DNA from: Adineta vaga
Taxonomy: Eukaryota; Animalia; Rotifera
Assembly (NCBI GenBank): GCA_021613535.1
Contig: CP075495.1
Coordinates: 4,278,001 to 4,342,000 of the forward strand
Direction of reading: 5' to 3'
DNA: 64,000 nt
Below are positions 7,436 to 52,648 of the stretch, piece by piece. Positions within the stretch are counted from its first letter, which is position 1; the number at the start of each line of letters is the position of its first letter. Both the position numbers and the translations under genes were made by a program. The notes beneath the pieces are model-generated. The model ran no database searches. It was not told the origin of the DNA and saw only the letters and a list, made by a program, of their open reading frames with translations.

Positions 7436-9728
<2,293 letters not shown>

Positions 9729-21895: not shown

Positions 21896-23376
21896 CTATC
21901 GAGTCGCTTTTCGTTTATTTGAACCTGTCGTTTGAACCACAGTATACGTATCATTATCATCTTCATTGTCAACTTCAGTTTGATTTTGAAAACTATGATT
22001 ACATCTTGGACAAGTAACTGCTCTTCGTTTGTAACTTTCTGGTTGAGCTTCTACAAAAAAAAACAGGAAACAAAAGACAGAACTGATGAAATGGAATACT
22101 ATTTTTTTACGTTACCAGTTAGTACTGACGAATAAACTGTTGTGTTCCACTCAGGAATACAAGATTGTCTATCTGAACTTATTGAACAAAATGTGATTGC
22201 TAACTGTGATTTTTCTAATTGATATTTTTGAATTAATTGTTTAGGATTTAATCTAACATATTTTTGAACGTCTGTTTTACTTGGATTGTCGATAGCATCT
22301 CGATATGGTTGAAATGGTATTAATGGTTGAAGTGATTTTAATGCATCTTGTTTTGATTTAATCAAAACCAAATATAATCTAAAATGTAATTATTTATATG
22401 TAAAAATATTTGTTAAGAAAGAAAAATTTATTTATTTACTTCATTTTGCCAAATTGATCACCCTTGACATCGAGAAATAATGGATTGCAATCTGGTATAT
22501 CTCCTCGTTCATTATCTTGTTGAAACATATATGGCATCAGATAACGATTACCAAATTCATCAGGTATGGTTAACCAATCGATTCGAAGAATACCGGGGAC
22601 ATTCACTGGAACCTAAGAAATTATTTAAATAGTTTAGAAGATTGATTTAGATTTCTATAATACCTGAACTGTCACAAAATGATTGCCTAATGCGTCCATT
22701 ATATATCGTGGTTTTCGTTTTCTTCCATTCTGAGCGAAATAATCACTTTTATAACGTGCTCGAAAGCATTCTTCTAAGTCATGAACGATAGCAATTGCAT
22801 GGGATTGTTCTTTCATATTTATTTGTGGTTGACCAACATCAACACATTGTGATAATAGTATTTGAACAGGACTTGATTGATGTTTTTTCTCTTTTACTAA
22901 ATAAAATGATCAAAAGTAAAATAATCATATGTTTTATTGACTCAATCACTTACTGGTATAATTTACAGGAAAATTATCCATCAATGCATGGTACTGATCT
23001 TGATCGACACAGGGATCTGAATATAGGAAACTGATTTTAAAAAAAATATTGATTTTTCACCATTTTTTACTTTGTTCATTCATTATATCAACATATGAAT
23101 GCGACTCAATTAACTCTTCAGATTGAATATATGAATCTACATAGATAGAAATTGGATCGTATTTTACTTCGTGCAATATGGTGTGGTATGCTTACCAAAT
23201 AATACATCTATGTCATCTAAATTGTCAGTTCCAAGACCAACTGGATTCGTGTTTATTCCTAGATCACTCAAGCCTAGTTCTGCTAAAACGTCAGCCTCAG
23301 TTATTGGGTGCGCAGTAAAACCACTAAATGCTTCTTCAGATACACGATCTAGAGGATGATAATTTTGATCAGCCAT
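21896..23376 (-). CDS. R1: divergent Rel-homology-domain protein, subfamily A (acidic N-term, RHD-N, CxxC, NLS; no IPT)
   Basis: Spliced exons give IAIVHDLEECFRARYKSDYFAQNGRKRKPRY...FVTVQ|VP...RIDWLT...YLMPY...YQLEKSQLAITFC...VTCPRCNHSF...NKRKATR*. Confidence 0.75.
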
Positions 23377-24202
23377 CAATTGAATAATTTATTCGATGTA
23401 CTTTTTATTTATAGATAACTAATATGCAGGAACAAATATCGATGATGAAGTATCAAAGTAAGTCTTTCTCACTTATGTTTTATTTAAAATAACTGATAGT
23501 ATGCATGGGATTCTTGTTGCAGTATTTATAAACGGGAAAAAACCAATTTTTTGTAGGTTTTTTCCACACGTATTTACTTCGGAAGAAACAGAACGAGAAA
23601 AAATGCATCGGATGACTAAGCGATGATGACGATGTGCCGTTCGCCGAAATGTAATGCAACATATTTCGACCAGTGTGAAAAAAAAATATATAAACTGAGT
23701 ACTATTTGATAAAGAAAAATGTCAGGATCATGATTGAACAGTATCATTATTCACTATTAAAACATTGTTGTTTTCATCATATATGTTACACGAGTCAGAA
23801 CAAAATAAGTGTAACTTAGGGTTATAGAAAAAATTAAAAACGGAGGTAATATTTTCATCAGTATTTCATCACTATTCGGTTGAAGTATATCAAACGAGAT
23901 TTCTTTTATCACTGTTTGAGTATACCATTGTTTCATCATTCGATACGATAACAACATCATTTTTATGATTTAGATACATGCAAGAATGTTATCTTTTCTC
24001 TCAAGATTTATTTATAATAAAAAATGAAAAAAGTTTGTTACATTGTCGAATTAAAATAAACTGAAAATAAATATAATGAACAGAAGAACTGTCATTACTA
24101 CATGTTTTTTTGGCTAAAATAGAAAAAAATCATGGATATTTATAAAATAACAATGTACACAAAAATGTAATCCTACTTTTTTTTCTTTTTTTTCACGACG
24201 AA

Positions 24203-25632
24203 TTATTTTTTTCGTTTTTTCACCACTTTTTCATGTCCAATATCATCTGTTGAATCTTGTTTTGGTTCAAACGAATGCGAACACTTTGGACAAGTAACTG
24301 ATCGTTTTTTCGAAGCGTTAGACGGTTCCTCTGAAAAATATTTAGAAAAAGAGAACATAAAGAAACATTTTGATTTATTTCTTACCAGTCATCACTGTCG
24401 AATAGACCGTTGTATTCCATGCGGGCCTGTACGATTTCCTATCTGGACCCAACGAGCACAATGTAAATGCTAGTTGTGATTTATCCAAATCATAATACTC
24501 AATTAATTGTTTTGGCGGCATTTTAGGAATTTGTAAAAAGTTTGAAGATTGCTCGACTGGTGGAAATGGTTGCAGTGGTTGAGCAGATATCACTTCACTC
24601 TGTTTTGGTTTAATCAAAACCACTTGTAATCTATATGAGAAAACAAAAGAATAGCATGCACATCAAAATGTAATTGAAAGATGTAATTTACCTTATAAAG
24701 CCTAAATCATCAGCTTCGATTTCTTTTACAATAGGATTACGATCTTCTACAGCATTTGATTTATTGTTCTCCTGAAATTTACCGGGCATCGAAAATCGAA
24801 TATTTCCAAATTTTTCGATTGTCACCCAATCGATCCGTAGAAGAATTTTAGCACTGGGTGCAACCTATTGATTATAAACATATGATTATGAATTAAAGAA
24901 AAATTACACGTTGTAAATATTACTTTCAGTGTAACGAAATGATTTTCATATTCATCAGAGACATATCGTGGAGGATGCACATTTCCATTTGACGAAAAAT
25001 AATCACTTTTATATCGTGGCTTATAAGTTGGTTCTAATTTATTGACAACTTGAATTTCGCACGATGAAGTTTTCGATTGTGTCACTGTTTTGGTCTTGAC
25101 GGAATTTGAAAGTGGAACACCGGTAGATTGCGATGCTACTTGTTCACTTTGAACTAGAATCATATTAAGTATCTCGATTAGATAGAAAACATATATATAT
25201 ATATAAAGCATTCTTACCAGCAAGTTGACCGGTCCAATATGAATTAGTATCATCAATAAGTTGCTGATTAATATAATTATTACCATCATCTATTTCGGAA
25301 AAAAAATGAAAACAAGAAACACTTTATTCATATACTCTTTACCATTCGATTCAGTCGATGCAGGAAGGTATTGATCGAATTCGCTTTTGTCAAAACCACC
25401 ATCTGGAAGACCTATAAATAGAAGAAAAAATGGCTCTGGAATTCAAGAGCAAATATTTATTTCATATCTTACCAATAAAAGTAATCAAATCTCGCAAATT
25501 GAGATTATTCGTGAAAGAATCATCACTCGTTGTATTCAATCCTATTTCACTCACTGCAATTAATTCTTGAATTTCATCACCAACTGGATTAGTTCGAAGG
25601 AATTCTTCTACTGATATCACTTCCATTGTCAT
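24203..25632 (-). CDS. R2: divergent RHD protein, subfamily A
   Basis: IQVVNKLEPTYKPRYKSDYFSSNGNVHPPRY...FVTLK; YDLDKSQLAFTLC; VTCPKCSHSF; ends VVKKRKK*. Paralog of R1. Confidence 0.75.
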
Positions 25633-26485
25633 ATTGATCAGTATAAAAATAAAAAATAATCTAAAAGAAACTCTTTCAATATATATATACTAATGAAAGT
25701 AATGATGCTATTGCGTATATTTAAAAAAAAACACTTGTTTTTCCCTACTCACTGCTTCACTACGAAGAGCTTAGTCATAACAGAAGAAGAACAAGAAAAA
25801 AATAGTTGAAGTAAAAGAATCGTGATATACTTCATTTAACTTATCTCAGATTTTTGAAATACTTATTAATACTAATGTCATTCATATTATGAATGATTGA
25901 TAATATCTGATTAAATGCTTAAGAATATATACTTTTCATAACCGACTCGTAAAACTCCAACTGGATGATTCACAAAATAAGCACTGTTTACACTATAGAG
26001 AATAATTTACCCATTAGTAGTTGTAGACATTCTTTTTCTTTACTTTTTTCTATTGATTTCATTCTAACATTACTTATGTAATAAAAGTAGTTTCGTTGTA
26101 GAAAAGAATGACGGCGAACTGTGAGTTATTGCGTTTTCTTTCAATGATATCTTACGAAATGATTCGATATTAATAAGAACTATTAGCATTATTTTTATTG
26201 CCCCTTCTTTTCGTCTGTGCATAGAAATGTCATCATATTAGAAAAAATGAAGTAAATGGATGTTGCTTTTTAAGTTGATTATTTATTACTTTTTATTTAA
26301 TAAGTAGTTGTAGAGAATATGATTAAATAGTTGGAAAAAAGAGAAAGCAATATCAAAAAGAGACAACGATGATATAACGTTGAAGGTCAATAAAGTGATA
26401 ATCGGATGTGTATATGTATACAGTATATGTGGACGAAGACAACGAAAGCTATTGGCATGAATCAATAATAGTAGAAATCTTTTTT

Positions 26486-28437
26486 TTAAGTACTTTTTTT
26501 CTTTTTATTCGTTTGGTTGTTTGTTTTCGCCTAGAAATATTTCAAAAAATAGAACTTTTTAAACGAAAAAAAAAGTCGTTTTGATATACTTTTGTAACGA
26601 TTCGGGATGACTGATTTGATGTTTTCCGTTTAGTCCCCTTTTCTGTAGCGGAAATATTATTTGGATCAAAACAATGTTGACAATTTGGACAGCTGATTGT
26701 CTTAACTGAAATCGTCGTTGCTGGAACTAAAAATTAAAAAAACAAAGGGTTTATCTTTAAATAATAAAGAAACAATTATCTATACTTGATTTCGTATTTG
26801 ATACAGCTGATGATTTAGTTGGTATTTCAGTAATTACAGATGAAATAATCGTTGTTTCTGAATGAATATCAAACGAACCATCTGGTAATTTTGTACATAA
26901 TGTAAACGCTATATGTGATTTATCGAGTTGATGTTTGTTAATTAAATCTTTTGATGGTAATTTTTCATCACTGATAATATCTATATAAAAAAAACAAGAA
27001 TAGATTTGTATCTGAAAACAAACGTTCTTTTACTCTGTATAGAACCAACTGTATCGGAAAAAGGTTTTAATGGCTGAGCATCATAAAGTTGATCTAATTT
27101 TGATTTAATTAACACGAGCAGAAGTCTGAAAGAAATTAATTAGAACGATTGAATTCTTTGTCGAAGTATTTTAAAGTAAAAATTTACTTCATTGAATCAC
27201 ATCCTTCGGATATTTGAACAGGTAAATAAATCGGATTTTGATCAGGAACTTTTATATCATCATGATTCGTTTGAAATTTATATGGACTATAATAATGTTT
27301 GTGATCATCGGTCGCTATGGTAAGTAATGCAACACGAATATATTTATTTTTTAAATCACGACTATATCCGATTGGTATCTACAATGAAGATTTATCATTA
27401 CAATATTTGAAGTTCAATATTTTCGTACTTTTAACGTAACGAAATGATTTCCATGATCATCGGCAACATAACGTGGTCGACGAACATTACCATTCTGTGG
27501 AAAATAATCACTTTTATATCGTGCTCTATATGTTGTTTCTAATGGAAAATGAAGTTGTAATTGATTACGTGTGGAATCTGTTACTGCTACAGACTGCGAT
27601 AATAATATAGACTGATCCGATGGTCCTTTTGCTGCTAGAAAAATGACACAAATAAATTCTCTAAAATGATTTCAAATCTCTTTTTGTTTTTAGGACAAAC
27701 ATTTTTCAACATGTGAACGAAGAACGGGTAATACAGAATTACTTGTTTTAATCATTACTGAGCATTCTTCAGAACTTTGAATCACTAAAAATAAATTAAT
27801 CAAATCAATCGTAGAAATTTATATACATTTGAAATTTTACGTTTAGTCATATCATTCGACTCCGTTGAATTGAATGAATTACCATCATCATTAAAACAAC
27901 CGAACAAAGGATTCGTTACTGAAGAAAAATGAACGATTAATTCTTATCCAATCGTATATCTAATACTTACTAGAAAATGACTCCGTGTCTCTTAAACATT
28001 CAAGTAAATCATTAAACGATTGACTTGAATCCGATATCATATTGTAGTCTAAAGAAAAATTATACAGATGAATTTCATATTTTTCTACGGTATATTTATT
28101 AACCTGTCACATTAATTTCACGGAATGCATCCGCATTATCAAAATCATAGTGACCAGGTGAACCTATATGATATAAATATTAAATGATTTAATTAGAATT
28201 TGTTTTATTTATATACGAATTTCTGCACTTGGTAGTGACGCCTGTATGGAACCTTTGATAAAAGAAGAAAAAACAAATACGAATTCATAAATAATCAAAT
28301 AAATTAATGTGATACGTACAAATTGAAAAAAGGAAGTCGGAATTATCCATCGAAAGATAATTATTTTCAATATCTAAAATAAATTCTCCATGAAAATTTA
28401 TCTACAAAATACATTCATACTCACTCTGTTCTGCCAT
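26486..28437 (-). CDS. R3: divergent RHD protein, subfamily A (many micro-exons; essentially absent from the ORF track)
   Basis: LQLHFPLETTYRARYKSDYFPQNGNVRRPRYVADDHGNHFVTLK (about 27430-27570); HYYSPYKFQ; HQLDKSHIAFTLC; ISCPNCQHCF...TKRK. Both ends approximate. Confidence 0.75.
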
Positions 28438-29267
28438 GCTTTAATTTCTATTAGAAAATAATGGAGTGAACAAAATCATGTCGTACACCACGATTAGTGG
28501 TGACGATTAACAAAAAAATAATTTATATATCTGAAGAAATCAAAAGAAGTAAGGTCAATTCAATTCACCACGCGCTGAATTTTTACTCCGCAATAAGATC
28601 ATATTGTATATATTTACAAATGGTACTTGTTTTTTTCTTACAGCATGCATTGAAAAAAAAACAGAACACATTCATTTTATTATGAGTGTTTCTTTTTTTC
28701 TCTTATTCTGTTCTTGGTTTTTTCCCACCAATACTCTTATCCTACTGTTCTTCGCTTGATTCTTCTTGTGTTTTTCTCTTTCTACAAGGTTATTTTGTTT
28801 TATGATATTCTCTATCTATGACTCAAATGTAACATTGACGTCACCATGTTGGCATTATAAAAGAAAAAGCGAATTACAAATCAAATCAAATATTGAGAAC
28901 GAAAAGAGATATATTTATGATTTATTTGAGGTGAAAATAAAAAAGAAATAAGACATATGATTGGAAATAAATAGTGAATGAAAAAAATACAAGAAGAAAA
29001 ATATGATGAGTAACGTGTACCTGATAAGATGAAGAATATACGCTACTGCGAATAAGGCCCTTCTGCAACGATAATTACGAACTATCGATGTACGATTTTT
29101 TGAATTGTTTTGTTTTCTGACTCGAAGTATGAGTAGTCTAAAATGAAATGAACTATTAATTATGAGTATAAAGTACTTTTGTATTATTCATTGATAGATA
29201 AAGTTTCTCATCTCTATCGAATGATACTTTCTTTTCTACTAATGTAAATATGAGTATACGTAAGAGC

Positions 29268-30812
29268 TTATACCGATGATCTAGTTTTCTTTAATGGACG
29301 AGTCATTGGCGTATTTATGCTGTCCACGTCTTCATCAGATTTCTGATCATTTGGCGAAACTTTTCGTTTGACATCTTTTATTGATGTTTTTTCTAAAAAA
29401 TGAGATATACTCATTGATATAGATTGATGTATATATATACATATATATCATTATTTTTCTGTACTTACGTTCACCAATAAGATTCGTTTCACATTTAATA
29501 TCTAAAATATGAAATGTATTCTCTTGTTTGACGGCTAATTGAAAGATAATTTTATAACAATTTAAATCATAATCATTGGTAAATTGTTTTCCTTTGGCTG
29601 TTTTACTAATACGTTCTTCATTGGGTATTGTATCTAAAGCGAAGAAAACAAAAGTGATATTTTAAGTAGAAATAATAGATATACATTTTTCTGTCATTCG
29701 TTCGTAGATTGATGTATCAAATGATGTTAAATTGAACGTATATTGATCAAATTTTTGACAAATAATAGATAAACGAGGAAATCTAATCCAGAAAAAGAAT
29801 TTTTGTTCGATTCAACATCATGTAAATTCTCATGATACTCACGATTTTTCACACATTTCAATATCTGATTGAGTTAATGGAACAAAAATGCTTCCATGAT
29901 CTAATTCAATGGCATCAGCTGTACGATATTTGATATCATTTACATGTACAAATGTTTTATGACTTGGATTGTTTGTTGAAGTTACCATAGTAATAACAAT
30001 ACCAAAGGTTGCATTTCTAATCATTGATGCAGCTGTTAAATCCGGTAACTATTTATAAAATTTAAGATAAAATCAAAGTGAGAAACTAAGTTTAGCACTA
30101 ACCTGAATAGTTACGGGATGCTTTTTCGAATCTGGTAAAAATCTTGCACCATCACTTGCATAACGTATACGTTGATCAGGTTTAGGTTGTTCCTTAACGA
30201 TCATCATACCATCTATAGTCACATCAACGTCGAGTTTTGTTGTTGTTTCATTATTATGATTAGACGATATAATCTAATATAACATAAAAAAGTATTTTTT
30301 TTGTGAGATGATAGATAACGTACTATTTCTTCTTGTAAAGTATAATTCAAATTCTGACTGAATTCATTTTCTACTAAATGTTGATTCGTCATAATATCAT
30401 CATTTTCTATTCATACATTTATGATAATATTCAAAATCAACTTTAGATATATCAGAACTGATTTACCTAGGATAGAATCTAATTCTAAAGAAATGAGAAA
30501 ATATTTCATTGAAAATACTTAATTCAAAACATACGTGAATGTGTATTCAGAGATTCTTCGAATATCAATGGTATATCGAAACTGAGATCAGTCAATATAT
30601 TTGATTCGAGACCTTGATAATTTTCATCAACAAATTGTGTAAAGTTATTCGACATATCTTCCTCTTGAAGTAATTCTTTTGTATAGAATAGAAAATCGCC
30701 ATCTGTATTTATTTGATCGACTAGAATTCATGAGAAGTAAAAATTCAGAATAACCTTGAATTTATATTCATTTTAATCTTTTTAACATACATGCATCCAT
30801 TTCTGACAACAT
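29268..30812 (-). CDS. R4: divergent RHD protein, subfamily B (RHD-N only)
   Basis: GMMIVKEQPKPDQRIRYASDGARFLPDSKKHPVTIQ (about 30103-30210); FVHVNDI; FPRLSIICQK; YDLNCYKIIFQLAV; tail KRKVS...RPLKKTRSSV*. Confidence 0.78.
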
Positions 30813-31377
30813 CGTATTTATTCTTATGTAGAGATAGAAATGATTTGAGCTGCTGTTTAATTCGCTTTTCGATTGTAAAATGATTGCTCAGAAAGCAGCT
30901 GTTTGTATACATTTTCATTTTTACCCAGTTTGTGTAAAAAGTTTGTGATGCGAGTGACTAACGGATGAAAATTGTTGTTCTATGAGTCAAGAAGAAAAAA
31001 ACTATTGGTGATAAGAAGAAAGTAATCACAAAGCAAGTACATACGAATAGATGACGACAGTTTGTCGAGAGAAGAAAGAGTATTTTTTCTATTGATAAAC
31101 TATAACTATACATGGAGACGTTGTTCTCTTCTTCAAATAACTTTCTTCTCAACATGGGAAAAATTGTTGATGTACTGAAAGACTCTGTAAATAGACTTGT
31201 CCTTTTATTTTCATGAATAAATAAAAAGAAAAAGAAAAACTAATTCAAATGAAAACTGTATGCGGATGAGGGCCTTAGCAAGAATGAATTAGTTTGACTT
31301 CATTCATAGCTGATCCTTTGAATCATAGCCTCTTGATTATTATTTAAAAAAGAAAACTAAGTAACAATCATGAAAAT

Positions 31378-33016
31378 TTAGTTGTCTGAAACAACATGTG
31401 TTCGGCAGGAAACACCGGTTGTAGACCATCGATCATTTTGTTTAATCATTAATTCACAAGCAATTTGATATTGATCGGTGTGATATTCACGATCGAATTG
31501 TTTTGCTTTTTTCATTTTGGATAGCTTGTGTTCATTTGGAATTGTGTCTGAAAAAGAATACGTATCATTGTTAATATATAGCAATAGAAATAATTGAAAA
31601 ACATACATTGATAAGCATGATCAACGCCAATTAGAGTATCATACGGTGTTAGTTCATAGACGTAATTATTGAGCAATGCTTTAATAATAGATAAATGTCG
31701 AAATCTAAATTCATTAGAATAGATAATTTATAGTTTATATCTTTTTTCTCCTACATTTTTCTTCGATTACGAATATCTTCTTCTGTCAATGGGATACGGA
31801 AAGAATGTAGTCCATTTTGTACAGCATCTTGTCCATTGTAAGATATTTCGTGTTGATGAACATAGACTTTGTGTTGAGGATTGGAATGTGTCGTTAATAT
31901 TGTACATTCAATCCAAAATGATTGATTCGATTTTGTCAAACAGTCTGTTAAAACCGGTAACTGAAACGAAAAAGAAGAAAATAGTTGGAAATAAAAGTAA
32001 TTTCGATAAATACTAACCTCAATTGTCATCGGACGTTTTCGCGATTCTTCTAAATAACGAATTCCATCAGAACGATAACGAAAGCGATGACTAGCTTTCG
32101 GCTGTCGATGCATTCGCATAATTGGATCACCATTACGATGCATTGCTTCGATGATCGCTGCAAGATCAACAGTTTCAGAAAACTGATTCACCGAACTTTG
32201 TAACTACAACAGAAAATTTATCCATCGTTTCTATTCCGAAATAGAAAAAGATCGCAGTCATTTAGTTTACATAATTAGCAATTGTTGTAATCGCTTGTAG
32301 ATGATCATTGTCTGTAGTTGCATTGTCAATTGCTTGTATGTCTATAAAAAAAAATTCTATTCTATTCAATCCGACGTGATCACAAACCTGTTGTTGATTG
32401 TAGAAAATCTTCTTCTAGATTTGTCGATGATGCTGGTAATTCTAAAATGATTCGTACGTGCAGTGAAAGAAAAGCATCGTGACTATCTCATCAGCCATGA
32501 ATATTTCCACTGACAATAGCATAAAGAAGGGGCAACTGATTTTAATTTTTCGAACAAAAAAAGAAAAAAATTGATTCGCCATTCAAGTACGTACCTAGTT
32601 CTTTAGCCATTGAGAATAAGTCCGATAAAACAGATGTATCTACACAAATTGATTATTAAATTGAAATTTAATTTCGAAAAATATCTACCATCTAGTTTTT
32701 GATAGTCGATCGTGGGTATTGATGGACTCGGCGAATTTTTCGTTGGTAATGTTGCAGGATTTGACATTCCAAGTTCTATGAAGATTCTATTACTTAATTT
32801 AGAATAGATTGCAATACTGATATTTACCTGTACTAAATAGTAATTGATCAATAGCACCATGAGAAGTATCGAATAAAAACAGATCTTTATCCTCAAGCAC
32901 CATATTTGAATTGTTTGATAGTTCATATTCCCAAGCTAAACACAAAAACAAGATAAATCACATAGAAAACAATTGGATAAATAGAGAAGCTCACGTTCAA
33001 ACTGTTCCAAATCCAT
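31378..33016 (-). CDS. R5: divergent RHD protein, subfamily B
   Basis: PIMRMHRQPKASHRFRYRSDGIRYLEESRKRPMTIE (RFRY as in NF-kB); VYVHQHEI; FRHLSIIK; YHTDQYQIACEL. Confidence 0.78.
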
Positions 33017-33459: not shown

Positions 33460-35129
33460 TTATTTTGATTGAGTTCGAATTATCTAGAAAACAAAATGTT
33501 TTGAAGAAAATATATTATGTTAAACGAAAGAAATAAAAGAACCTGCTTACCGGAAGGCTCGTTGATAATGAGGAGGATTTTTTGATTTTCTTAGTTGATT
33601 TTTGACGTGGTCTTTCATATTCTTCATCAGTATCATCAAAATTATCTGTTGTGACTGATCGTTTCAATGATGTCTTTGGACTGGTTTGATTTTCTTCTAA
33701 AATAAAAAAAATATCAAATCAATTTTATAACAAAAAGTAACTTATGGTTTGAGCTACTAACTTTCATCCATAAGATTTGTTTCACAGGCTATATTGGTAG
33801 GATACCAAGTGTTACCTTGCTTAATCAGTAATTGACAAGCGATTCGGCTTGATTTTAGATGATATATATCACGAAACGCTTTTGCTTTAGCCACTATACC
33901 TTTCGCATTTTTATTCTCATCTAATAAAACTTCAAAGTCGCAATGTATTCAATTGTTATTTAGAAGACAAATTACATACAAGCTTCAGATTGATTACTTG
34001 TTGACAATGGATCATATGGTTTTAATTCGAATTTGTATGCATCCAATTTTGATTTTATGATAGATATACGAGCCAGTCTAAAAATAATTGTGCAAGTCAA
34101 TGAATGAAAGAAAGAAACGAAGTCCTACTGCTTGTATCCTGCTTGTATATCTGCTGGCGCTAACGGAATACGTACAAATCCATGATCACATTCAGGTAAA
34201 TCATCTGCATGATATTCTAGTTTATCTATATGGATATATGCTTTGCCTGTCGGATTATTATTTGATGTTATCAAAATTAATTGCAGCCAAAATGATTGGT
34301 TCAAATTCATTTGACAGTTTCTTAAATTTGGCAACTATAAAAAATGAACTAAAATTGATTGACAATATTCTGTAAGATCATACTTTGATGGACATAGGTT
34401 TTGATCGCGATTTTTCAATGTGACGTTTACCATCACTTTGATAACGTCGACGAATGTCTGTTGGCGGTTGTATCTCCACAGACATAATTCGATCCTGAAC
34501 ACTTCTATCTAGTTTTTGTACATCAAGTTTATCCAACTCTTCTACGATCCATTCATTTGACATATCGCATGACTTCAAAGAGAAATTCCCACTAAGTTTC
34601 ATCAAAAAAAAAATATCAAGTGAAGTACGAACTGGATTTTCAAAAGCGAATTTATCATCATCCAGCATTTCATTAACTTTACTTTCCACATCTAAAAACA
34701 AACATTTTACATTGTTCAGAATATTATGACATAAGAATTTCAACTGACCATATGGAATTATAATGCTTTCTTCACTACAATTGGATTCTATATAGAAGGG
34801 AGAATAAAATAAGGTACGCAAAAATCTATAATAGATATACCCTCGTTATAGAATGGTAAAGATGATACCACCGATCGCTCGTCACAAATATCTGTTACTT
34901 TAAAAAATATTGAATTTAATAAAAAACTATATTGATGAAAAAATGAAATTATTTACTTTTGCTGAATGAAAATCCACTCTTGAGATGTTGAGTAATACTG
35001 TGTAAGTCCTGGGCCGATTTTAAATTAATATCATTATTGTCATTATTGTTTTCTTCTAAAAAACAGGATATTATACGAAATAATAGAAATTTATAAGTCG
35101 AATTTACCATTCCATGGTTGAGAAGCCAT
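33460..35129 (-). CDS. R6: divergent RHD protein, subfamily B
   Basis: IMSVEIQPPTDIRRRYQSDGKRHIEKSRSKPMSIK; AYIHIDKL; RISIIKSK; YHLKSSRIACQL; acidic/basic tail DDTDEEYERPRQKSTKKIKK. Ends approximate. Confidence 0.75.
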
Positions 35130-36845: not shown

Positions 36846-38972
36846 TCACATGAATCTATTCGTTGTTATTAATATCTGCTGAGATAATAGATTAGCACAT
36901 AGTGTATTATAATGATTTTCTGCTACTTGTTTTGCTGTTTGTTTATCATTATTCAATTGTTCAATGAGAAAATGTTTTGCTTCAGTATCCAATTTTGTCA
37001 AAATATCTTCCAGTGTCTTTTTCGCTTGATCATGGGTTATTTGAGCAAGTATATGAAAAATATTATTGCCTAATGTATCAGTTTGTTTGATAAGTTCTGG
37101 TCGTTTTTGTAAGATTCTTTCGATTAATTTCGTACGATTAAATTTTGCTGCAAGTATCAATGGTGTTTCTCCCTGAAAATTCATTTGTTCAAGATAACTA
37201 TTTGTATTCTCAATAAGTTGTAAGGCAAGATCGATATTTCCTTGTCTTATAGCATTATCTAATACCAAAATTTTATCTTCAAATTGACTTGTTGATATAG
37301 TTTCAACATTTCTTTCGGTCTGATTTGATGATAAATTAAAAAAATGAATTTGATCGTCTTCATCATCTTGAAAACTAGTCAGTGATCGTTTTTTCGTAGT
37401 TGATAGTGAAAGATTTACAGATGTTAAGTCCGAATTGCAAACAAGACATGTATCTACTGAATACAAGAAGAAGAAGAAGCATAGTTTAGTATAAGATAAA
37501 TCAGTACAAACATGATAGATAAGTAAATTGAACTCGAATAAGTTCTTTATCATTTAGAGTAATAACAATTGGTATAGAGAATCTTGGATGATTTCTTGTT
37601 AATTGTACTGGACATGGTGGTGTTGAGAAGGAGATAGTTTTTTCATCAACATAATCTCGATGAATCGATGCTTTTGGATCAAATGTATGATGTTCGAAAC
37701 GAATATTCAATTCTAAAAGAAAATATAATAAAGAAAAATGTTCATATATGTAGTAGATATAGGGTTCAATCTTATTTTCTGATATAAAGAACATTATATA
37801 TTTTAAGTGCATACTCAAAAATAAGATTGCTTTTTACGATTTTAGACATCGTTATTCATACATTTACTTAATTTTACGCTCTAACATTAAATACAAAGTC
37901 CTTCTGTTATAGATACGTTTTCATACTTTCTATCTTTATGATTTGTTATGTCATATAGATAAGACAACTCAACTACCAGACGACGAGATATATGAAATAA
38001 AATATTTTTAACCTCGATAGATTTTTGTATATTTTCATCATTTCATTACAGAAATTAAAATTGAAAAATGAATTACTTTTTCGTTTATCAAGTTGTGGAA
38101 TAAACATTAATATTTCATCACCACCTTTACAATCTCCTATTTGAGGTGCATATCGAAAACATGTATCATTGTCATTTGATGGTGTTGTCGTGCCAGTTAT
38201 GACTTGTGAAGAAACTGTTGAAACATAATATGTCACTGGTAATTCAGTTTGACGTTCGATTTCAAAAGCAGCTAATGAAAAAACGAGTTGAGATTGGTAT
38301 AATTGATAATATTCAATCGTTTTTCTAGCATCTGATAAATCGATTCCAGTCGGTCGATGATATTCTTCTTTGAAATATTGAAAAGAGAAACATTTCAATA
38401 TCAAACATACGAAAGGAATATTCTGTTTTACCAGCATTGAGAATTCTCAATGGTCCATGATCTTTTAATTCACGATGAGTTAACTTTTGTAGACAAAAAT
38501 GAAAACTGAAAAAAAAAGTAATTCCTCAATTAAACTTTTATTCAATTGAAAATTCCAACCTTTTTCGACCAGTTTGAAGTTCGATATCTGATATAGGAAA
38601 ATATAATGAATTGGTAATTTTATGACGAATAACATCATCTTCTTCTGTAGCGAGTATATATGGATGTACACAAATTAAATTAACCCGTTCATTAGGTACA
38701 GTAACAAGTCCCAAACGAATATAATAACGTCGTATATTTACAAGCCATTCTTTTGGAATCTATATATAGGAATTGAAAAAAAAATAAAAGATAAATTCTT
38801 ATTTGCTTCTGCTTACCTCGACTGTTGGATACACAGTATTATGTGTATTCGTTTCTCCATGAATAAAACGTTGAGCTCGATTTTGTTGACGATTGATTTC
38901 ACGTATATATCGTTCTCGGTAGAATGCTTTCGGCTGTACCAAGATCCGAAGTCGTGGCATTGGTTCTGCCAT
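36846..38972 (-). CDS. R7: NF-kB p105/p100-like protein, subfamily C (RHD-IPT-CxxC-NLS-ankyrins, no acidic N-term)
   Basis: MAEPMPRLRILVQPKAFYRERYIRE...YPTVE; CVHPY; IPT 'RYAPQIGDCKGGDEILMF...ISFSTPPCP'; CLVC; KKR; ankyrins GETPLILAAKFN and GNNIFHILAQ. Confidence 0.85.
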
Positions 38973-40848: not shown

Positions 40849-40976
40849 TTCTTCTTGTTTATGTTTAATCGAACATTTTCAAATACAATCAGTTGATGGT
40901 AATGATATTGACCTAACGATCATATTCCAAAAATAGATAGATTCTTTTCATTCATGATAAATATTTGAAAATATCT

Positions 40977-42516: not shown

Positions 42517-45329
42517 TTAAGCATTCTGCTGATTATTCGTTAAAAGTTCAAAACAACGTGTATTTCCATGCAATTGTGCTGATTGAGCCGGTGTTTCATT
42601 CATTTTGTTCTCCTGTTTCAATAGATTGTTTTTCAATTTTTCAGACAGAATTGCTAAGATACTTTCAATTGCTTCAGCACCTGCATCTTCTTTCACATTT
42701 GCAAGTAAATGTAACATATTGTTACCATCATTATCTTTCGCTTCAATCACATCTTCTCGTTCCTTCACAATCAACTCAATCACTTGCCATTCATTACATC
42801 TTGCACCAACTAATAATACTGTTTCGCCATTTCCATTTCTTTTCTCTAACAGATTATTTGGTTCACGCATATTAGCCACTTGTTGAATTATCGTCGATAC
42901 TAATGGAATATATCCATGTTCAATAGCATCATGTAATGGTGGTGGATTTTCGTCACAGGTTGATAATAGAACACGAGTTCGCCGAAATAGTTTTGATGGA
43001 TCATTTGTTCGAACAAATGCGACTAATGCTTCTTGTAATTGATTGAGATATTTATCGAACTTAGCAGAACTATCTATCAGTTGAGAGAAGAGAAAGAGTG
43101 AGATGAAGTATTGTGAATAGGATGCAATGTGTCACAAACCATCGGTTGTTGTTGTTGTTGCCATTCTTGCTCTTGTTGTCGACGCAAATGATGGTTCTTT
43201 GTTTTTCTGATGAAAAAAATAAAAAGTATAGGCGAACATGATGGACAATAAAGAGAGAAGAGAACAAACCTCGTCAAGTGTGAGTTTACTCATGTTTTGA
43301 ATGATATCACCACCAGAGTCATCCTCACAGAAAAGGTCGGACCCACATCGTCTTTTATTGCTATTGTACAGCTGATTTGACACCGTTCTCTGTCGACAAT
43401 TTGGACACTCATACATGATTATTTTCCTCGCTAAAACACATATTGGTTAAAGCAGATCGATAGATCCACATACTAAAATGACATACGTGTCACATATGTA
43501 AAATCAATGGGAGCCAAATCGAAACCATCTTCATTAATGATCATTTCCACTTTAATATCTTGATCTCCAATAGGAAGTGAACATGGTGGTGCCAAAAACG
43601 AGAATGTTTTCTGATCCACAACAGAGATCTTATCGACACGTATTAATCGATTTAAACCAAAATTAAATAAAATATAATAGCCTTCAAAAATAATCAAGAA
43701 ACTTATTTGAGTATGAGAAAAATACAAACCAACTAACTTATCTTTTTGATGAGGTGTGGCATAACAACTAATATTTCATCGCCACCTCGATAATCAGCTT
43801 TTTTTGGTACACATTTGATTGAAGTAGACGTTATGTGATCAGGACAATTCGTATTTGATCCTTAAGAAAGGAAAAGAAAAACTCTATCACCATCTTCGCA
43901 CATTTATACGTACTTGCTCTATCTGTTGTTATATCAGTCATAACGTCAGATTCAATCGATGTGTGCCATTGTGGAGTTGGATACGGTTCACAATCTAATC
44001 GTTCAGCAATTGTAAAGAAAAGTTGAGACTTTCCCAACTGATATGTCTCAATAGTTTGTTTAACATTTTGTGAATTTTCAATACGTTGTTCATTCGATGA
44101 ACCTAAATATACGAAATTAGTATCGTATATTGTATCAATATAATATCTTAGTTGTTCCTACGATTGAATAGTATCATAGATCGATACGATCGTAATTCTT
44201 CTTGTCTCTTTTTAATTATAGTCAGTCGAAAACTAAACATATATATATAAGCATATGTCAAAACTAACGAGAAACAAAATCATAAATGTAACCATTACCT
44301 TTTTTCACCGGACTTCATCTCCTTGTCATTGACACGAAAATAGAGAGTATTTTGTTGAGATGCATGTTCAAAAGTATCATTATCTATTGAACTAAGCTCA
44401 TATGGATGAATATAATGATTATGTACTGTATCACTAGTTACAGTAACAAGATTAACTTGAATATATATTTTCCGATCTAAAGAACGCCACGCGTCTGGAA
44501 TCTAGTTTTTACAAAGAAAAAAGATTTGATTAGTTATGAAATTGTATAAGATACGATAAATAGTAAATTTATATTATTTCAAATTAAACTTTGAAATAAA
44601 TACTTTATTATTGTTCCATGTATTTTGAGGAAAACTACACATACCCTAATAGTTGGATATTGATGCATTCTGCTTCTTTGTCCTGTACGAATAAAACGAT
44701 TTGGTTGACTATTTTGATTGCCTTGTTCGCAAACATAACGTCCACGATAAAGTGGTTTTGGTTGAGCTATTACTTTAAGTTGTTCATTGTTGGATCGATC
44801 GAATGCGTTTTGTAAAGGAGCCATAATTAAAGGACTCGTTTGCGGTTGCTGATTATTCAAATCAGAAAGTAAATCATTGAAACTATCATCAATACCTTCT
44901 AATCCTTCTGCAGAAACAGCATCGGAAGCAAAGCCTGATGAACTTGAAGAACTTTGACTGTCTGAGATAGGAAATTCGAGACTATTCGTATTTGTAGTAT
45001 CGTTATCTAAAATGTGTATATAGATTATTTAAATAACAAAAAAAAATTAATGAATTATTGCACGTACTCGTATTATTATTATTATTATAAAAAAATGCAT
45101 CTAAATCTTAAAATAGAATTTAAAAATCAATTTTTTTAATATCAATCAAATCTACTTTCTAATTCGGTAAAATGCTCTGGTTCCACGTTTAATAAATCTG
45201 GTTCTAGTAGAAGTATGCTATCGGCTATATCTTGATACAGTAACAAATCTGTTTCTATCGAAAGAAAGATTATACAATAAATTAACTCTACTTGAATGAA
45301 TAAATACCCGAATAGTTTAAGCCAGCCAT
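42517..45329 (-). CDS. R8: NF-kB p105/p100-like protein, subfamily C
   Basis: LKVIAQPKPLYRGRYVCEQG...YPTIR; HYIHPYEL; IPT KCVPKKADYRGGDEILV...FSFLAPPC; CPNC; NKRR; pre-ankyrin helix; ankyrins GETVLLVGARCN, GNNMLHLLA and NETPAQSA. Confidence 0.87.
42673..43280. repeat. Near-identical dispersed duplicate, copy 1 (partner 49834-50440)
   Basis: Nucleotide-level near identity with 49834-50440, including introns. Confidence 0.93.
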
Positions 45330-46366
45330 TTTGTTCGTTGTGCAATTTTGATAAACAATTTTTGATGGTATGTTAGAGCGAATAATGTTCCTTCCGCTTT
45401 TATACGAGGAAGATTTAGATAAACGTAATTGCAAGCAGTATTTCTTTTTAGCTCATGACGTGCTGGAACTTTCCCCAGACAGAACGAAAGAAAAACAATA
45501 CAATGCGATACATGCGAAATAACAAAATATAGGTCTCTCTCGATAAGATAAGAACATTAGTAGAGAGACGTCCGAGCAGCATACAAAACACGATGGTATA
45601 CATTACTGAATAGATTCAGGTCATGCTTGTAATCAAAGAAAAGGATAAAGTTTAAGATAGTATTAAGTATATCAAGTACTTTTTACAATAACGGGAAATA
45701 AGATTAGAATAGAAGTAATGAACAATTCAGTGATGTTTCGTTGTTATTTAGCTCTGCTGAATACTGATGAGTACGATAAGTAGCTGAATATAGTGTTTAA
45801 TCTTTTTACAATTTGAATCATACATAAGAAATTTAATATAGATCGATCGATGCATTTGATATTTGTCAGTAGACTATGAACTTTGAAAGATCAATATATA
45901 TTTGGCACATTTCATATGAAAAACATGATTACTGAAGATAATATTATAATAAAAGAGAAAGTATCAGCTAGAGATGTGCTTCTGATTGAGAGAAACACAT
46001 TGGTAAATATTTGATTCATTCATTTATATCATATTAGAATATTAGACAAGAAAACCTTTTCATGTTGTCTATTGGAATTATATACTTATTTCCAGCATGT
46101 TCTTACATATAAAATTGTTTTTTTATTTTCTCTTTTTGTTTCATATGACTATTTTGATGAGAAACTTGATAAGGATCACTTTTTTTCATGCAATTTTATT
46201 GGTTCGTATCAATTTAAATGCCATCATTTAATCACATAAAATCAAAATACATAAACATAGATGGAAAAGTTGGGAGAAGAGTAGGATTACAAAACATCAA
46301 AGCATCATATTCCTGAATAAAATAAAGAAAGACCGGGTTCAGACAAAACAATCTTGTGAAAGAACA

Positions 46367-49362
46367 TTATTCATTCTCTGCATCATCATCATCATCATCA
46401 TCCGACGAACTTGTATCGTCGGAAATGTGTTGTAGAGGATAAATTGTTTGTAAATATTCCGTTATATCATCAAGATGTAGTGATTGCGCTAATTCCATTG
46501 GTGTCATAGTTAAATTACTTTGATTACCAATTTGATCTAATTTTCCGTCTTCAATTAAATATTTAATCATTTCTAAATCACTGTAACGAACAGCAAGATG
46601 AATGAGATTATCACCAGTTTGATTCTTTAATTCCTGTACATTGTTTTTGAAATATTTCAGAATATTTTTTGTAACTAATAGATTATTCTTTGAAATACTT
46701 AATTGTAATGGAGTTCGATGATCTTGATTTGGATGATCGAATTTTTCTTGAATTGAAAATGATTTTTTCAAACAATAATCAACTATTAAATCAATTATTT
46801 CAGTTGATATTGAATATAATGCCATGATATGAAAAATATTATTTTCCTTTTCATCTGTACAGTTCATCAATTCTTCCGAATCTATTTTCTCTAATAATAA
46901 TTTAACTATTTCTACATGATTGAGTCGAACAGCATGTAAAAGTGTATTTTCGCCCATATTGTTTTGGTTTTGAAGAATATCAATAGAAGCAATAGGAATA
47001 AATTTGGATAAAATATCAATATGATTTTTACTAATAGCAACATGTAATGATTGAGGTTGTTTTTTGATAAAAGTACGAGATAAACGAAGAAGTGGACCAT
47101 CATCATTATTTATAAATAATGACTCCACAACTTTAGAAAGTATTTGCATAATTCCATCCTTAGGATTTTCATTGACTTGAGTAGTTTGTATTGGTGAGAC
47201 AGGAGCTGAAATAATAATACAAATGAAAAGTATATCTTGACATTTATTCTCTGGAAGTATATTCGAATGAAGAATAAGACAGCGCTGCTTACCAGAGTTT
47301 GAAACTGTTCCTGCCGCTGCTGCTGCTGTTGTTGTTGTTGATGATGATTCAGGTAACTATGCGAAATATATAGTTTTTTCGAATGCATTGTGAAAAATGG
47401 AGATGTAACTTACAGGTTCAGATAATGATTCATGAAGTTTAGGAGAATTACCATCATTAGGTACAACACCATCATCCATATAAAACATATCAGACGCCAT
47501 ACGTTTATTTGGTCTGTTTGGTGTTGCATTATTTTGATTTATGATAGCATTCAATTGACAATTTGAACATTGATTTACTAGTAAAGCGAAACAAAAGACG
47601 AATATTTTATTTGAAGGAAAAATATTGACATTATTCCTTAAATTACCTGTTGGCATATAAAAATATGATATAGTTCCTATTTCACGAGTATCTTGTCGAA
47701 GGATAATATTCACCGGAATGATTTCATTGAATTGAAAAGGAAATATAGGTATTTTAAATGAGACAATTTGATCTTTGATAGTCAGATCGTTAACTGGTTG
47801 TGACCAATGTGGATTGACAGTATCACATTCGAATATCACTTTTAATACTGTAAAATGTAGTTTAAAAATAATAATTTCAAATCATAATCAATTCTATTTT
47901 ACTCACCTCCATATTTTTTTGGTTCAAGTTTTTTATCCGTCAAGATAATAATCATCTCTTCGGAATGTGTATTTAGACTGTACCGAGGTGCATACTTATA
48001 CACACGACAAAGAGGGACAGATGTATTTGTTCTATTGTTTACTGGTTGAGTATTATTTTCCGAATCTTTTCCTTTCGAATCAATTTCTATCATAATTTCA
48101 GAGAAAGCAGTAGTTTCTAGAAATGGAGTTATACATAATGTTTGATCTTGATCGACTTCTTTTTTAACAATAGTAAATGCTAGTTGACTTTTTTCAAGAC
48201 TATATCCTTTCTTCAATTGTTTTGGCGGGAGTTGTTGTGATTGAGCATTATCTTGTACATTTGAATCTAAATTCCAACAACAAGATAATTAATTCTTTCT
48301 TTTTGTCATTCAGTTTTCATATTTACAAACCATAACAATCGAATATTCGTAAATCTCCATACGCTTTCAATTCATTCTGTAATTTCTTTACAATTCGTAT
48401 TGATGGAAAGCTACAATATAAAGTTGAATAACTTTAACAATTGATAGAATTCTTCCGTACCTTTTAGTACCAGTTATATAATCTTCTTTCTGAATAGGAA
48501 CATAAACTGAATTATAATATAAATCATTTAATTGATCGTCAGTCGTATGCTCGAGTGAATACGGATGGATATAACGTAGATTAGTTTTATCGTTGATGAC
48601 TGTTACAAGACATACACGAACGTGATATGCTTGATTAGGATCAAGATATTTTTGTGGAATCTAAACAAATAATAGCAAAAGTTAATTCAAATCACACGTT
48701 AAACATACTCGAATAGCTGGTCCATTGTAATTTGAATTTTTAGTACGATTTTTTAATACACCTTGACGTTGATCGTTGTTGTTATAATCAGTTCGATAGC
48801 GTAGTTTTTTTCCATAATATGGTTCAGCAATGATTTCTATTTGTTCAGAATATGATTGCGTTAAAGCAAAGTCTTGAACACCAGCTAAATGAAAAGAAAA
48901 ATTCGTTATGAGAAATTGATTTATTCTAATATACTATTTGATATTTCTTGTTGATTTGAATTCGAGTTATTATCTGGAGAATAACCCGCTGGAGTTTGTG
49001 CATCTAAACCTAGGCTACTAAATCCTGGTGTTAACGGATCGAGATTGAGAAAGTTCTCTAAATCTAAAATAAAAACTTAATCTTAAAGAGATTTTTCTTT
49101 CATTTCCAAACCAGCATTGGTAGTGAAGTCAGAATATTGTCCTATAATGAGAAAAGATTATTAATATAATATTTTTTATTGATATTTCCATACAAAAAAC
49201 TATATTACCTATTGAATCTTCGAAGAATGAGAGCGATGTACTATCGAGAAAATTGGAATCTAGTTCAACAAACCAACAAAACTAAATAGATTATATTCAT
49301 ATATTCTTCTTATTATTACCAGTAGATAAATGGGTACTGCTTTGATTATTTGAACTTGTCAT
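46367..49362 (-). CDS. R9: NF-kB p105/Relish-like protein with full IkB-like tail, subfamily C
   Basis: IEIIAEPYYGKKLRYRTD...GPAIR; RYIHPYSL; YSLEKSQLAFTI; IPT RVYKYAPRYS...EEMIIIL...VSFKIPIFP; CSNC; RPNKR; polyQ; about 6 ankyrins (GENTLLHAV, ENNIFHIMA, HRTPLQLSI, GDNLIHLAV, TMTPMELA); acidic PEST-like end SDDTSSSDDDDDD. Confidence 0.87.
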
Positions 49363-49650
49363 AATGCTGTTTCAATAAATGTAATCTACAATGAAAAATC
49401 TATTTCGATATGAGAATATATATCTCTTTTTTTTCTTTTTATTATTTATACCGAATATATATATACATATATATACATACTGACTTTTTTGAAACAGGGA
49501 AAAAACAAGCTTTGATTTGTTAACACATTTGAGTCATAGAAACAACAGTATTTTCGATAGGTTGATGATTATCGAATGATTTTATTTGAAAAAAATTGAC
49601 AGAAAAACAGAATATGAACATGAAAGAGACACACATAGATTATATTTATC

Positions 49651-52648
49651 TTACAGACTAACTAAATAATTATTGATTTCATTCGAATTTGCCGCTTTGC
49701 TTAATAAACTCAAACATTGGGTATTTTCATGGGATTGTGCAATGTCTTTTGCGACTTGGCTTTTTTTATTTTCTTCTTTTAAAAGTCGCATTTTCACATC
49801 AATAGGTAAAATCTCGAGGAGATTCTTAAGTGTTTCAGCACCTGCATCTTCTTTCACATTTGCAAGTAAATGTAACATATTGTTACCATCATTATCTTTC
49901 GCTTCAATCACATCTTCTCGTTCCTTCACAATCAACTCAATCACTTTCCATTCATTACATCTTGCACCAACTAATAATACTGTTTCGCCATTTTCATTTC
50001 TTTTCTCTAACAGATTATTTGGTTCACGCATATTAGCCACTTGTTGAATTATCGTCGATACTAATGGAATATATCCATGTTCAATAGCATCATGTAATGG
50101 TGGTGGATTTTCGTCACAGGTTGATAATAGAACACGAGTTCGACGAAATAGTTTCGATGGATCATTTGTTCGAACAAATGCGACTAATGCTTCTTGTAAT
50201 TGATTGAGATATTTATCGAACTTAGCAGAACTATCTATCAGTTGAGAGAAGAGAAAGAGTGAGATGAAGTATTGTGAATATGATGCAATGTGTTACATAC
50301 CATCGGTTGTTGTTGTTGTTGCCATTCTTGCTCTTGTTGTCGACGCAAGTGATGGTTCACTTTCCTTCTAATGATAAAAATAAAGAAGATAGGCGAACAT
50401 GATGGACAATAAGGAGAGAAGAGAACAAACCTCGTCAAGTATGATTTCTCTCATCCCTGAAACGATAGCTTCAACAACGGGGATGACGTCATTAGATTCC
50501 CGTGGTCTTTTATTGCTATTGTCTGTTTCTCTTGCCATCATACTTGGCTGACAATTTGGACACGCAATCATAGTAACTTTCACCGCTAAACATAGAAACA
50601 AAATAGAAAGATGAAAGAGTCCTATGTTCGATGAGACGTACGTCTAATATATATGAAGTCGATATAACCTAAGTCAATATCATTCTCATTGATCACCATT
50701 CGTACTGTTAAATCGTGATTACCGACGGGAAATGGACATGCTGGTGCGAAAAAACAGAATGTTTTTTGATCAATAGGTGTGATATTTGTCACTACTATTG
50801 GTTCAGTTAAAGGAAAATCAAATATAATGCTATACGCTGCAAGAATGAAAAGAAATTATTGATAAGTGAAAAAATGAAGTACAACGCACTTTTGTTTTTG
50901 ATTGAATGTGCCATGGTGATTGCTATCTCTTCACCATCTTGCCATTGAGCTTTGCGTGGAATACATTTGATTAAGTTGAGAGCTGTATGATTAGCATGAT
51001 TCCTTGCTAATTCTTAAAGAAGAAAAAGTAGTAATACATTATACCTAAAAGGAAAACTAACGTTTTTTGTCAGCTTCTTCACCAACCATAATTTTAGATT
51101 CAATGGCGGTATGCGGTATGGTAATAGGAATTGGTTGCGAATAAGTTCGTTCAGCAATAGCGAATATAAATTGAAATTTGTGTAATTGATATGTAGCAAT
51201 TATCTCTTTCGGGTTTCCTATGTCTGGAACATGTTGATTGCCAAACAGATCTAAATTTACGACTCTGAATAAGATGATCCCACATTATCTTATAGAATTT
51301 TTCTTGGTTCTCAGAAATCCTATGTAATTGAATGCACTATCTATCTATCAGGTTTTCATATTGCGTCATTCAATCAAAGGAAAGAAGGATTGTGCACGAA
51401 AATCTTTTTTATTGAAGTATATTATGCACATCCTTATCATGAAATTCAATGCATTTTATTATAGAAAGTGGATAACCAATATATATATATCAATTGATAA
51501 AATTCCGAAGAAAATTTCTATCAAGGATATTGCACTGTTGAATTTTATGAAAACGTAGTTGATTCTCATCGCATTTTAGTCTACGCGTAACTTCAATATG
51601 ATTGTGATTGACTATATACTTACTTGTTTCATATTTTCGTAATGGTCCGTATTCTTTCAAATTTTTTTGAAGCATTACTGTTTGAGTTATTTGGAATCTA
51701 AATAGATAGATTTTAGAACAGGTTTAAATCAATATGTATCACTTTACTTTTTCTCACAGGTATTGAATTCTTCCGGTTGAATAGGAAAATACAAAGAATT
51801 GTTACCATCGTCAATGAAGTCATTTCCTTCGGCACCAATTTTATAAGGATGTATATAATGTTCTCGTATTTTATCTGTTGTAATTGTCACTGGTGTGACT
51901 TTAATATATAGTTCTCGTGACAAATCACACCATTTTCGTGAAAACTGTTGAAATAAATTGTAGATATGTAGAAGAACTACTCGCTATTTACCTGAACAGT
52001 TGGATATTCGTATCTAGGATCTGCAAGACCAGTTCGAATAAAACGATGACCTTGCCCATTAGCTGTTTTTGAATCAGTAGCATATCTTAGACGATAAGAT
52101 TCATTTGGTTGTGCGATTATTTTAAGTCGATCACCATTTTCTGCGTCAGATATATTAGGCAAGATGTTTATATTCGAAATTGCGCTTCCTTCATTATGAT
52201 ACGCGGGTGGTGTATCAACATTGTCAAGTTGAGGTAAAGTACCCCCAGGATAATTCTGCAGAAATTCTGTAAAATCGACAGGATATTCAAAATCTTCAAG
52301 AAAAAGTGTTTCTGTAATCGTCGATTGCTGTGGAGAATTGGAACTACTACCATTAGATGTTCCAACACCTTGTGGAGTTAATATTGAATCTACACATAAA
52401 AATATTTTTATGGAAACAAAATTACTTTTGATAAAGTCTTGCATACTTTGCGAATCTAAACAATAATTAAGATTACAAAAAACTTGAATCTTTGTGAAAA
52501 ATACATTTACCAAGAAGCTGGTTTACTGCTTCCATAATTGGCGAAGGTATATCAAGATCCAGGCCTAGTAACAAAAGATAAAAAGATGTATTGTGAAAGA
52601 TTTTTTCGTCAGTGAACAAAATTTACTATCAAGAATATTGTGCGGCAT
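49651..52648 (-). CDS. R10: NF-kB p105/p100-like protein, subfamily C
   Basis: RLKIIAQPNESYRLRYATD...RYEYPTVQ; HYIHPYKI; IPT KCIPRKAQWQDGEEIAI...FCFFAPACP; CPNC; NKRPR; ankyrin exon shared with R8. Confidence 0.85.
49834..50440. repeat. Near-identical dispersed duplicate, copy 2 (partner 42673-43280)
   Basis: Same sequence as 42673-43280 apart from a few substitutions. Confidence 0.93.

Follow-up and report, generated by a model that had tools for sequence, protein, structure and literature searches.

Rel/NF-kB transcription factors are not known to dimerise other than through their IPT domain, and masking of the nuclear localisation signal (NLS) is the usual account of their control. In canonical p105/p100, the NLS stands immediately after the IPT domain and is followed by a glycine-rich region. 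Sites at which zinc joins two proteins have been described in other systems. For the Rad50 zinc hook, the four residues C-P-V-C suffice for a peptide to form Zn(peptide)2; the hook hairpin gains stability from the Pro and from a hydrophobic residue four positions after the second Cys (PMC5093744). The CD4/CD8-Lck zinc clasp reportedly combines a CxC and a CxxC motif in short, otherwise unstructured tails, which gain order only once the two proteins are bridged by Zn (PMC12198760). Here, we analysed a stretch of 64,000 nucleotides from the bdelloid rotifer Adineta vaga (G000:C2:4278001-4342000, on chromosome 2 of a 100.8 Mb genome with six chromosomes). This whole stretch is called the window below, and positions without a contig name are counted from its first letter. 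According to stop-to-stop translation, the window carries ten tandem, highly divergent Rel-homology genes on the minus strand (R1-R10), all of which have an exon containing R-x-R-Y and an exon containing H-P-Y. They were assigned to subfamilies A (R1-R3), B (R4-R6), and C (R7-R10). In seven of the genes, a single Cys-x-x-Cys (CxxC) motif precedes a lysine/arginine (K/R) patch, and an earlier note on this DNA, hereafter the original prediction, proposed that this motif may be an intermolecular zinc hook.

Our preferred reading, to which we give a probability of roughly 0.35, is that the CxxC would be a metal half-site completed in trans beside an NLS-like patch. The motif would form a lone zinc-knuckle-type beta-hairpin. 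It stands where the tail exon with the basic patch starts, immediately behind the last folded Rel-homology domain. Its cysteines would make up half of a tetrahedral metal site, in which the two thiolates would bind Zn(II) only jointly with two ligands from another chain, be it a second Rel paralog (homo- or heterotypic) or a different partner. Such a site might act as a metal-sensitive, and therefore redox-sensitive, clasp adjoining the import signal. The analysis shows the motif, its position, its being the sole pair of this kind, and its conservation, together with a moderately confident hairpin prediction for subfamily A; metal binding, completion in trans, and any influence on dimerisation or nuclear import are inferences. 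The arrangement resembles the Rad50 zinc hook in having one CxxC per chain without a cis pair, and subfamily A further shares the Pro after the first Cys and a hydrophobic residue at +4; 2 of 22 tails also gave a sub-threshold match to the Pfam family Rad50_zn_hook. However, the Rad50 CxxC tops a long antiparallel coiled coil, which contributes additional interface, whereas the flanks in the Rel proteins are predicted to be disordered. Moreover, Rad50 has no homology to the Rel tails, and Zn(Cys)4 in the latter is hypothetical. With the CD4/CD8-Lck clasp, the rotifer proteins share short Cys pairs in otherwise unstructured tails. They differ in being transcription factors rather than membrane-proximal signalling proteins, and a partner forming a complementary pair in rotifers would be hypothetical.

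The seven CxxC peptides quoted in the original prediction (in R1-R3 and R7-R10) were all present on the minus strand, and their Cys codons were checked by translation (Table 1). All of the corresponding exons begin at an AG acceptor with an identical codon phase (1|2 split) and represent a homologous tail exon. The first Cys is found 3 residues into this exon in R7 and R9, 8 residues in R8 and R10, and 12-13 residues in R1-R3, and the K/R patch follows 13-31 residues after the CxxC. In subfamily A, the knuckle lies between a first basic cluster and the acidic stretch. In R7-R10, the motif exon comes after the IPT domain and leads into the ankyrin region. As for the KR-type NLS that had been described after each motif, the K/R patch is present, its role as an NLS is putative, going by composition and position only, and the patch of the R9-like clade consists only of N/S-K-R. 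In subfamily C, this N/S-K-R island lies 13-17 residues past the CxxC (e.g., 43330-43345, 47500-47515, and 50490-50505, minus strand) and is kept even where the CxxC is lost. The island of the R9-like clade is too short for a classical NLS, so that it may have another role, e.g., in ankyrin docking or processing. The absence of the motif from R4-R6 was confirmed for R4 and R6, whose homologous tail exons contain no Cys, and the tail exon of R5 was not found. Full-length analyses were carried out on database proteins, with P0060 for R2, and the window genes were otherwise compared exon by exon. Exon support came from the GenBank model of R2 (UJR25782.1, which is P0060 of Adineta vaga), which matches R2 exon by exon and is an independent model for the R2 exon, and from short contigs of relatives with an uninterrupted frame, e.g., L012.

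The CxxC is conserved beyond chance and is probably ancestral to bdelloids. A profile of the H-P-Y exon was used for genome and protein searches; a long multi-exon profile was discarded because exon 3 was misaligned onto exon 2, and an exon-3 profile (A3) was used instead. The H-P-Y exon profile detected 25 copies in the genome. Among them is an ohnologous cluster on chromosome 5 (G000:C5:13,102,000-13,124,500; L001-L004) of eight Rel-like genes, inverted and collinear, with the subfamily order C, C, C, C, B, B, A, A. At the protein level, these share no more than about 40-60% identity with the corresponding window genes, indicating that the family is evolving very fast. In this cluster, the CxxC occurs at the homologous place in three of four C-type genes, both A-type genes, and neither of the two B-type genes, and dispersed copies on chromosomes 3 and 6 (L006 and L007) carry it as well. 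Searching 1.84 billion representative proteins with the H-P-Y profile returned 183 matches, and all named clusters that were looked up are bdelloid (Adineta vaga, A. ricciae, A. steineri, several Rotaria species, and Didymodactylos carnosus); the family is thus bdelloid-specific within the reach of this divergent profile. A word search with P0067, an A. ricciae relative of R8/R10, retrieved only P0067 itself and one paralog.

The motif is kept in the relatives from A. ricciae, A. steineri, Rotaria species, and Didymodactylos. Subfamily A follows the consensus [V/I]-[T/S]-C-P-x-C-x-H-x-F, then an acidic run and the K/R patch, and the subfamily C motif is a C-x-x-C with a mostly hydrophobic residue at +4. 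Tails chosen for having the motif were aligned separately for A (22 tails) and C (17 tails). The two Cys are the only invariant columns in both alignments, at a mean column identity of 31% in A, where the Pro is at least 90% conserved, and 26% in C. In an unselected alignment of 28 subfamily A sequences, both Cys were present in 24, one in 1, and none in 3, so the two are mostly retained or lost jointly. The persistence of the motif despite extreme divergence, which the original prediction had pointed out, and its conservation in orthologs, listed there as a check, are borne out by these alignments and by the chromosome-5 ohnologs and the other bdelloid genera.

The proposal of a single CxxC per chain held in both subfamilies, as no second conserved or co-varying Cys/His pair in the same chain was found in the subfamily A or C alignments. 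Subfamily A has just one other fairly conserved Cys, located in a core strand, and one fairly conserved His, located in the G-N-H-F strand, neither of which forms a pair; R2 (P0060) has four Cys in total. The conserved Cys/His columns of subfamily C are the H-P-Y histidine in RHD-N and positions in the ankyrin region, which are present with or without the CxxC. An R3-like tail of Rotaria magnacalcarata fits C-x2-C-x12-H-x4-C, that is, a full C2HC pattern. We considered a degenerate full C2HC finger and rejected it: the His is replaced by Pro in the close relative R. socialis and is absent in Adineta and Didymodactylos, so the pattern is no conserved feature. Of the three outcomes that would have refuted the original prediction, two were thus examined and did not occur, namely a second Cys/His pair in the same chain and a lack of conservation in orthologs.

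A metal or cofactor could also be held without a second protein. Zn might find its remaining, non-conserved ligands within the same chain (acidic residues, or the His two positions past the second Cys); alternatively, the site might hold two-coordinate Cu(I) or be a Cys-Pro heme-regulatory motif. The Cys-Pro dipeptide with a His close by is reminiscent of heme-regulatory motifs, as T-C-x-x-C is of copper-chaperone sites. Consistent with such a monomeric site, most subfamily A sequences retain the His two positions past the second Cys, one has Cys in its place, and Thr/Ser stands before the first Cys and Pro after it. However, the Pro, so well conserved in A, and the His are both missing from most subfamily C motifs, several A members carry Asn, Thr, Lys, Leu, or Arg in place of the His, and the R. 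socialis substitution described above argues in the same direction. A heme-regulatory motif would not require the second Cys, which is as conserved as the first, and heme binding is only a candidate function. We regard a site of this kind as quite unlikely.

The sequence context of the motif, C-P-x-C with an aromatic residue four positions later, is that of a zinc-knuckle-type hairpin. A Pfam scan of 22 tails alone gave only sub-threshold matches, all of them to zinc-knuckle families: Zn_ribbon_4 (its second knuckle) in 14 tails (best E-value 0.0014), Zn_ribbon_Brz in 6, and CpXC, CPXCG, ZNF512 C2HC, UBZ, and Rad50_zn_hook in 2-4 tails each. When compared with the PDB, the tail profile matched the Cys half of consensus C2H2 fingers and of UBZ fingers, with about 10-12 bits per match. 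C-P-x-C-x-x-x-F aligns with the finger consensus, with the UBZ fingers of TAX1BP1 and FAAP20, and with the second knuckle of Zn_ribbon_4. Unlike these fingers and ribbons, the rotifer chain is without a second ligand pair (His/His, His/Cys, or a second CxxC) and has the first knuckle only. The motif is therefore best described as a predicted generic knuckle hairpin, assignable to no family. In the AlphaFold2 model of R2, the block with the CxxC has a predicted local distance difference test score (pLDDT) of 77 and forms a short strand pair with disordered flanks. As distinct from the Rad50 hook, neither this model nor the AlphaFold2 model of P0067 has helices next to the motif, whose flanks have pLDDT below 50. 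An ESMFold2 dimer of two copies of P0060 residues 314-358 with Zn scored 0.20 against a mark of 0.32 and was counted neither way.

Another candidate is a metal-free redox switch, in which the thiols would form an intra- (or inter-) molecular disulfide under oxidative stress and thereby alter the presentation of the adjacent basic patches to importin or DNA. On desiccation, bdelloids are exposed to strong oxidative stress, and DNA binding by Rel proteins is sensitive to redox state. The strict two-residue spacing, the joint loss of both Cys, the location in a flexible, solvent-exposed region, and the position of the subfamily A motif between two basic clusters that B keeps without a knuckle would all suit such a switch. 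Nevertheless, the motif bears the marks of a metal knuckle (a nearly invariant Pro, an aromatic residue at +4, and a hydrophobic residue at -2) rather than of a redox CxxC, which is usually found at the N-terminus of a helix. There is also no thioredoxin-like context. We consider a purely redox function rather improbable.

The assignment of these proteins to the Rel family rests on fold and motif and not on a Pfam threshold. Residues 131-320 of the R2 model form a confident core (pLDDT about 90), whose 43 best Foldseek matches in the PDB were all N-terminal domains of Rel, NFAT, or TonEBP proteins (RelA, p50, c-Rel, p52, NFAT, and TonEBP), with a best E-value of 2e-6 and a template modelling (TM) score of 0.63 to the p65 N-domain 6ggr_A. 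The AlphaFold2 model of P0067 comprises RHD-N, an IPT domain (strands 305-396), and ankyrin repeats, and matched two-domain Rel structures (RelA, p50, c-Rel, and p52) with an E-value of about 4e-13 over about 330 aligned columns. The tail exon of R7 matches Ank families in Pfam. The cut-off of Pfam RHD_DNA_bind (27 bits) was not reached, the best score being 22.4 bits for P0067, and the R8 exon gave an RHD match with an E-value of only 0.096. Six-frame genome scans with PF00554 and PF16179 yielded no match, which is no evidence of absence given that the family is divergent and exon-split. The recognition-loop motif R-x-R-Y-x-C-E reads R-G-R-Y-V-C-E in R8 and R-x-R-Y-K-S-D in R1-R3, which retain the Arg and Tyr, have the Cys and Glu substituted, and are putative DNA-binding proteins. 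At least 25 Rel-like loci in this genome escape Pfam-based annotation, and the bdelloid Rel repertoire is probably under-counted. Our literature search found nothing on bdelloid Rel proteins or on a CxxC after an RHD.

The subfamilies differ in what precedes the tail. The C-terminus of R2 lies 38 residues past RHD-N, and subfamily A therefore has no IPT domain. Subfamily B ends soon after the RHD-N-like exons and, judged by sequence only, is likewise described as IPT-less. An IPT domain is present in subfamily C, as modelled for P0067, which has in common with NF-kB p105/p100 and Relish the combination of RHD-N, IPT, and ankyrin repeats with a basic patch after the IPT domain. It differs from them in that the CxxC knuckle is inserted between the end of the IPT domain and the basic patch, and the rotifer sequences are too diverged to reach Pfam thresholds.

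Several observations weigh against a metal half-site completed in trans. The tail exon is shared by subfamily B, but there it contains no knuckle. The model of P0067, from subfamily C, gives pLDDT below 50 for the segment that holds the motif. The flanks are of low complexity, no coiled coil or other interface would hold two chains in register, and metal binding is hypothetical. Furthermore, several lineages have lost the CxxC while keeping the K/R patch, so the motif is dispensable. In subfamily A these are P0081, P0082, P0069, and the L008 and L009 genes, and the subfamily C members with a K/R patch but no CxxC are P0022 (chromosome-5 gene b), P0077, P0108, and P0110. Real losses in C concern the R9-like clade including P0022, in which the N-K-R patch is retained. 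Some apparent absences are truncated gene models that end at the preceding intron (P0168, P0176, and P0038). For P0038 (chromosome-5 gene g, L003:7430-7680, plus strand), the model reads through a GT donor, and splicing there would add an exon with C-C-P-H-C, which means that the annotation probably misses the true tail. The L009 (G000:C6:940501-950500, minus strand) and L008 (G000:C3:3366001-3376000, plus strand) loci are dispersed A-like RHD-N genes without CxxC (P0027 and P0020); in the database models, both continue into a long C-terminal stretch that by eye resembles leucine-rich repeats.

Repeated loss of the motif from retained genes would also fit a role without metal or redox chemistry, either structural or docking (a hairpin on RHD-N, importin, or an ankyrin domain), or a slowly decaying relic of an ancestral zinc finger. 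In line with this, all subfamily B members examined are without the motif, apart from P0063, which is probably a chimeric model, and the K/R patch persists in C members that have no CxxC. However, a Cys pair that stays invariant amid diverged surroundings, from Didymodactylos to Adineta, is hard to explain without thiol chemistry, and a relic would be expected to leave frequent single-Cys intermediates, of which the unselected subfamily A alignment contains one. We hold this explanation to be unlikely.

The trans-completed half-site is broader than the hook that had been proposed. In its specific form, a Rad50-hook-like Zn(Cys)4 bridge would link Rel chains and let the IPT-less subfamily A form metal-dependent pairs, either among its own members or with ankyrin-bearing proteins of subfamily C. 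One CxxC per chain, no cis pair, conservation, and the adjoining basic patch lend partial support to the intermolecular zinc hook, whereas a Zn bridge between Rel chains has no direct support, and we consider it doubtful. The idea that a hook replaces the IPT domain is weakened by subfamily B, which by its sequence also appears IPT-less yet has no knuckle, by subfamily C, which has both IPT and knuckle, by the several losses, and by the missing coiled coil or interface alongside. If a Rel-Rel bridge did exist, dimer composition and exposure of the import signal would depend on zinc and redox state, and a connection to the desiccation and oxidative stress that bdelloids undergo would be plausible. 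A lineage-specific Rel radiation, partly IPT-less, keeps a lone Cys knuckle beside an NLS-like patch across the sampled bdelloid genera. The retained knuckle would suggest a further level of control that depends on metal or redox state, and an inter-protein zinc site here would be a rare example beyond Rad50 and CD4/Lck.

Table 1. Positions of the Rel-like gene groups, CxxC codons, and tail exons in the window
Feature	Subfamily	Position	Strand	Remarks
Gene group R1-R3	A	21.9-28.1 kb	-	
Gene group R4-R6	B	29.3-34.9 kb	-	
Gene group R7-R10	C	36.8-52.5 kb	-	ankyrin repeats
R1 Cys-x-x-Cys codons	A	22001-22012	-	
R2 Cys-x-x-Cys codons	A	24281-24292	-	
R3 Cys-x-x-Cys codons	A	26680-26691	-	
R7 Cys-x-x-Cys codons	C	37437-37448	-	
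R8 Cys-x-x-Cys codons	C	43396-43407	-	
R9 Cys-x-x-Cys codons	C	47558-47569	-	
R10 Cys-x-x-Cys codons	C	50551-50562	-	
R1 last exon	A	21896..22050	-	basic patch, C-P-R-C then x-H-x-F, acidic stretch, K/R patch, stop; AG acceptor, frame open to stop
R2 last exon	A	24203..24330	-	K-K-R, C-P-K-C, acidic stretch, K-K-R-K-K, stop; matches UJR25782.1
R3 penultimate exon	A	26590..26726	-	C-P-N-C, K-R-K patch; AG acceptor, GT donor
R3 final mini-exon (45 nt)	A	26486..26530	-	second basic patch (four Lys), stop
R4 homologous tail exon	B	29268..29392	-	same phase, basic-acidic-basic, no Cys
R6 homologous tail exon	B	33551..33696	-	same phase, starts like the R2 tail (K-R-S-V-T), basic-acidic-basic, no Cys
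R7 last exon	C	36846..37456	-	C-L-V-C, K-K-R patch, ankyrin repeats, stop
R8 exon after IPT	C	43270..43430	-	C-P-N-C, N-K-R-R patch
R9 exon after IPT	C	47414..47577	-	C-S-N-C, N-K-R patch
R10 exon after IPT	C	50431..50585	-	C-P-N-C, N-K-R-P-R patch

The apparent mini-exon of R3 follows an intron whose GT donor is at 26589 and whose AG acceptor precedes 26530, and a gene model that reads through the donor would miss it. Splicing it in restores a poly-Lys C-terminus like that of the transcript-like ortholog P0102. The translations of the ankyrin exons of R8 (42520-43131, minus strand) and R10 (49654-50292, minus strand) are nearly identical, while the remainder of both genes has diverged. Among the database proteins, P0008, P0196, and P0202 of R. 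magnacalcarata are 730-780 residues long and have two Rel-like stretches, probably because tandem neighbours were fused by gene prediction. Neighbouring genes were given putative identities by eye from their translations: a Hsp70/BiP-type chaperone (7538-9725, plus strand), a gene resembling protein kinase C, with C1 and C2 regions (10543-14611, minus strand), and a formin-like gene with a poly-Pro FH1 region (56200-62600, minus strand).

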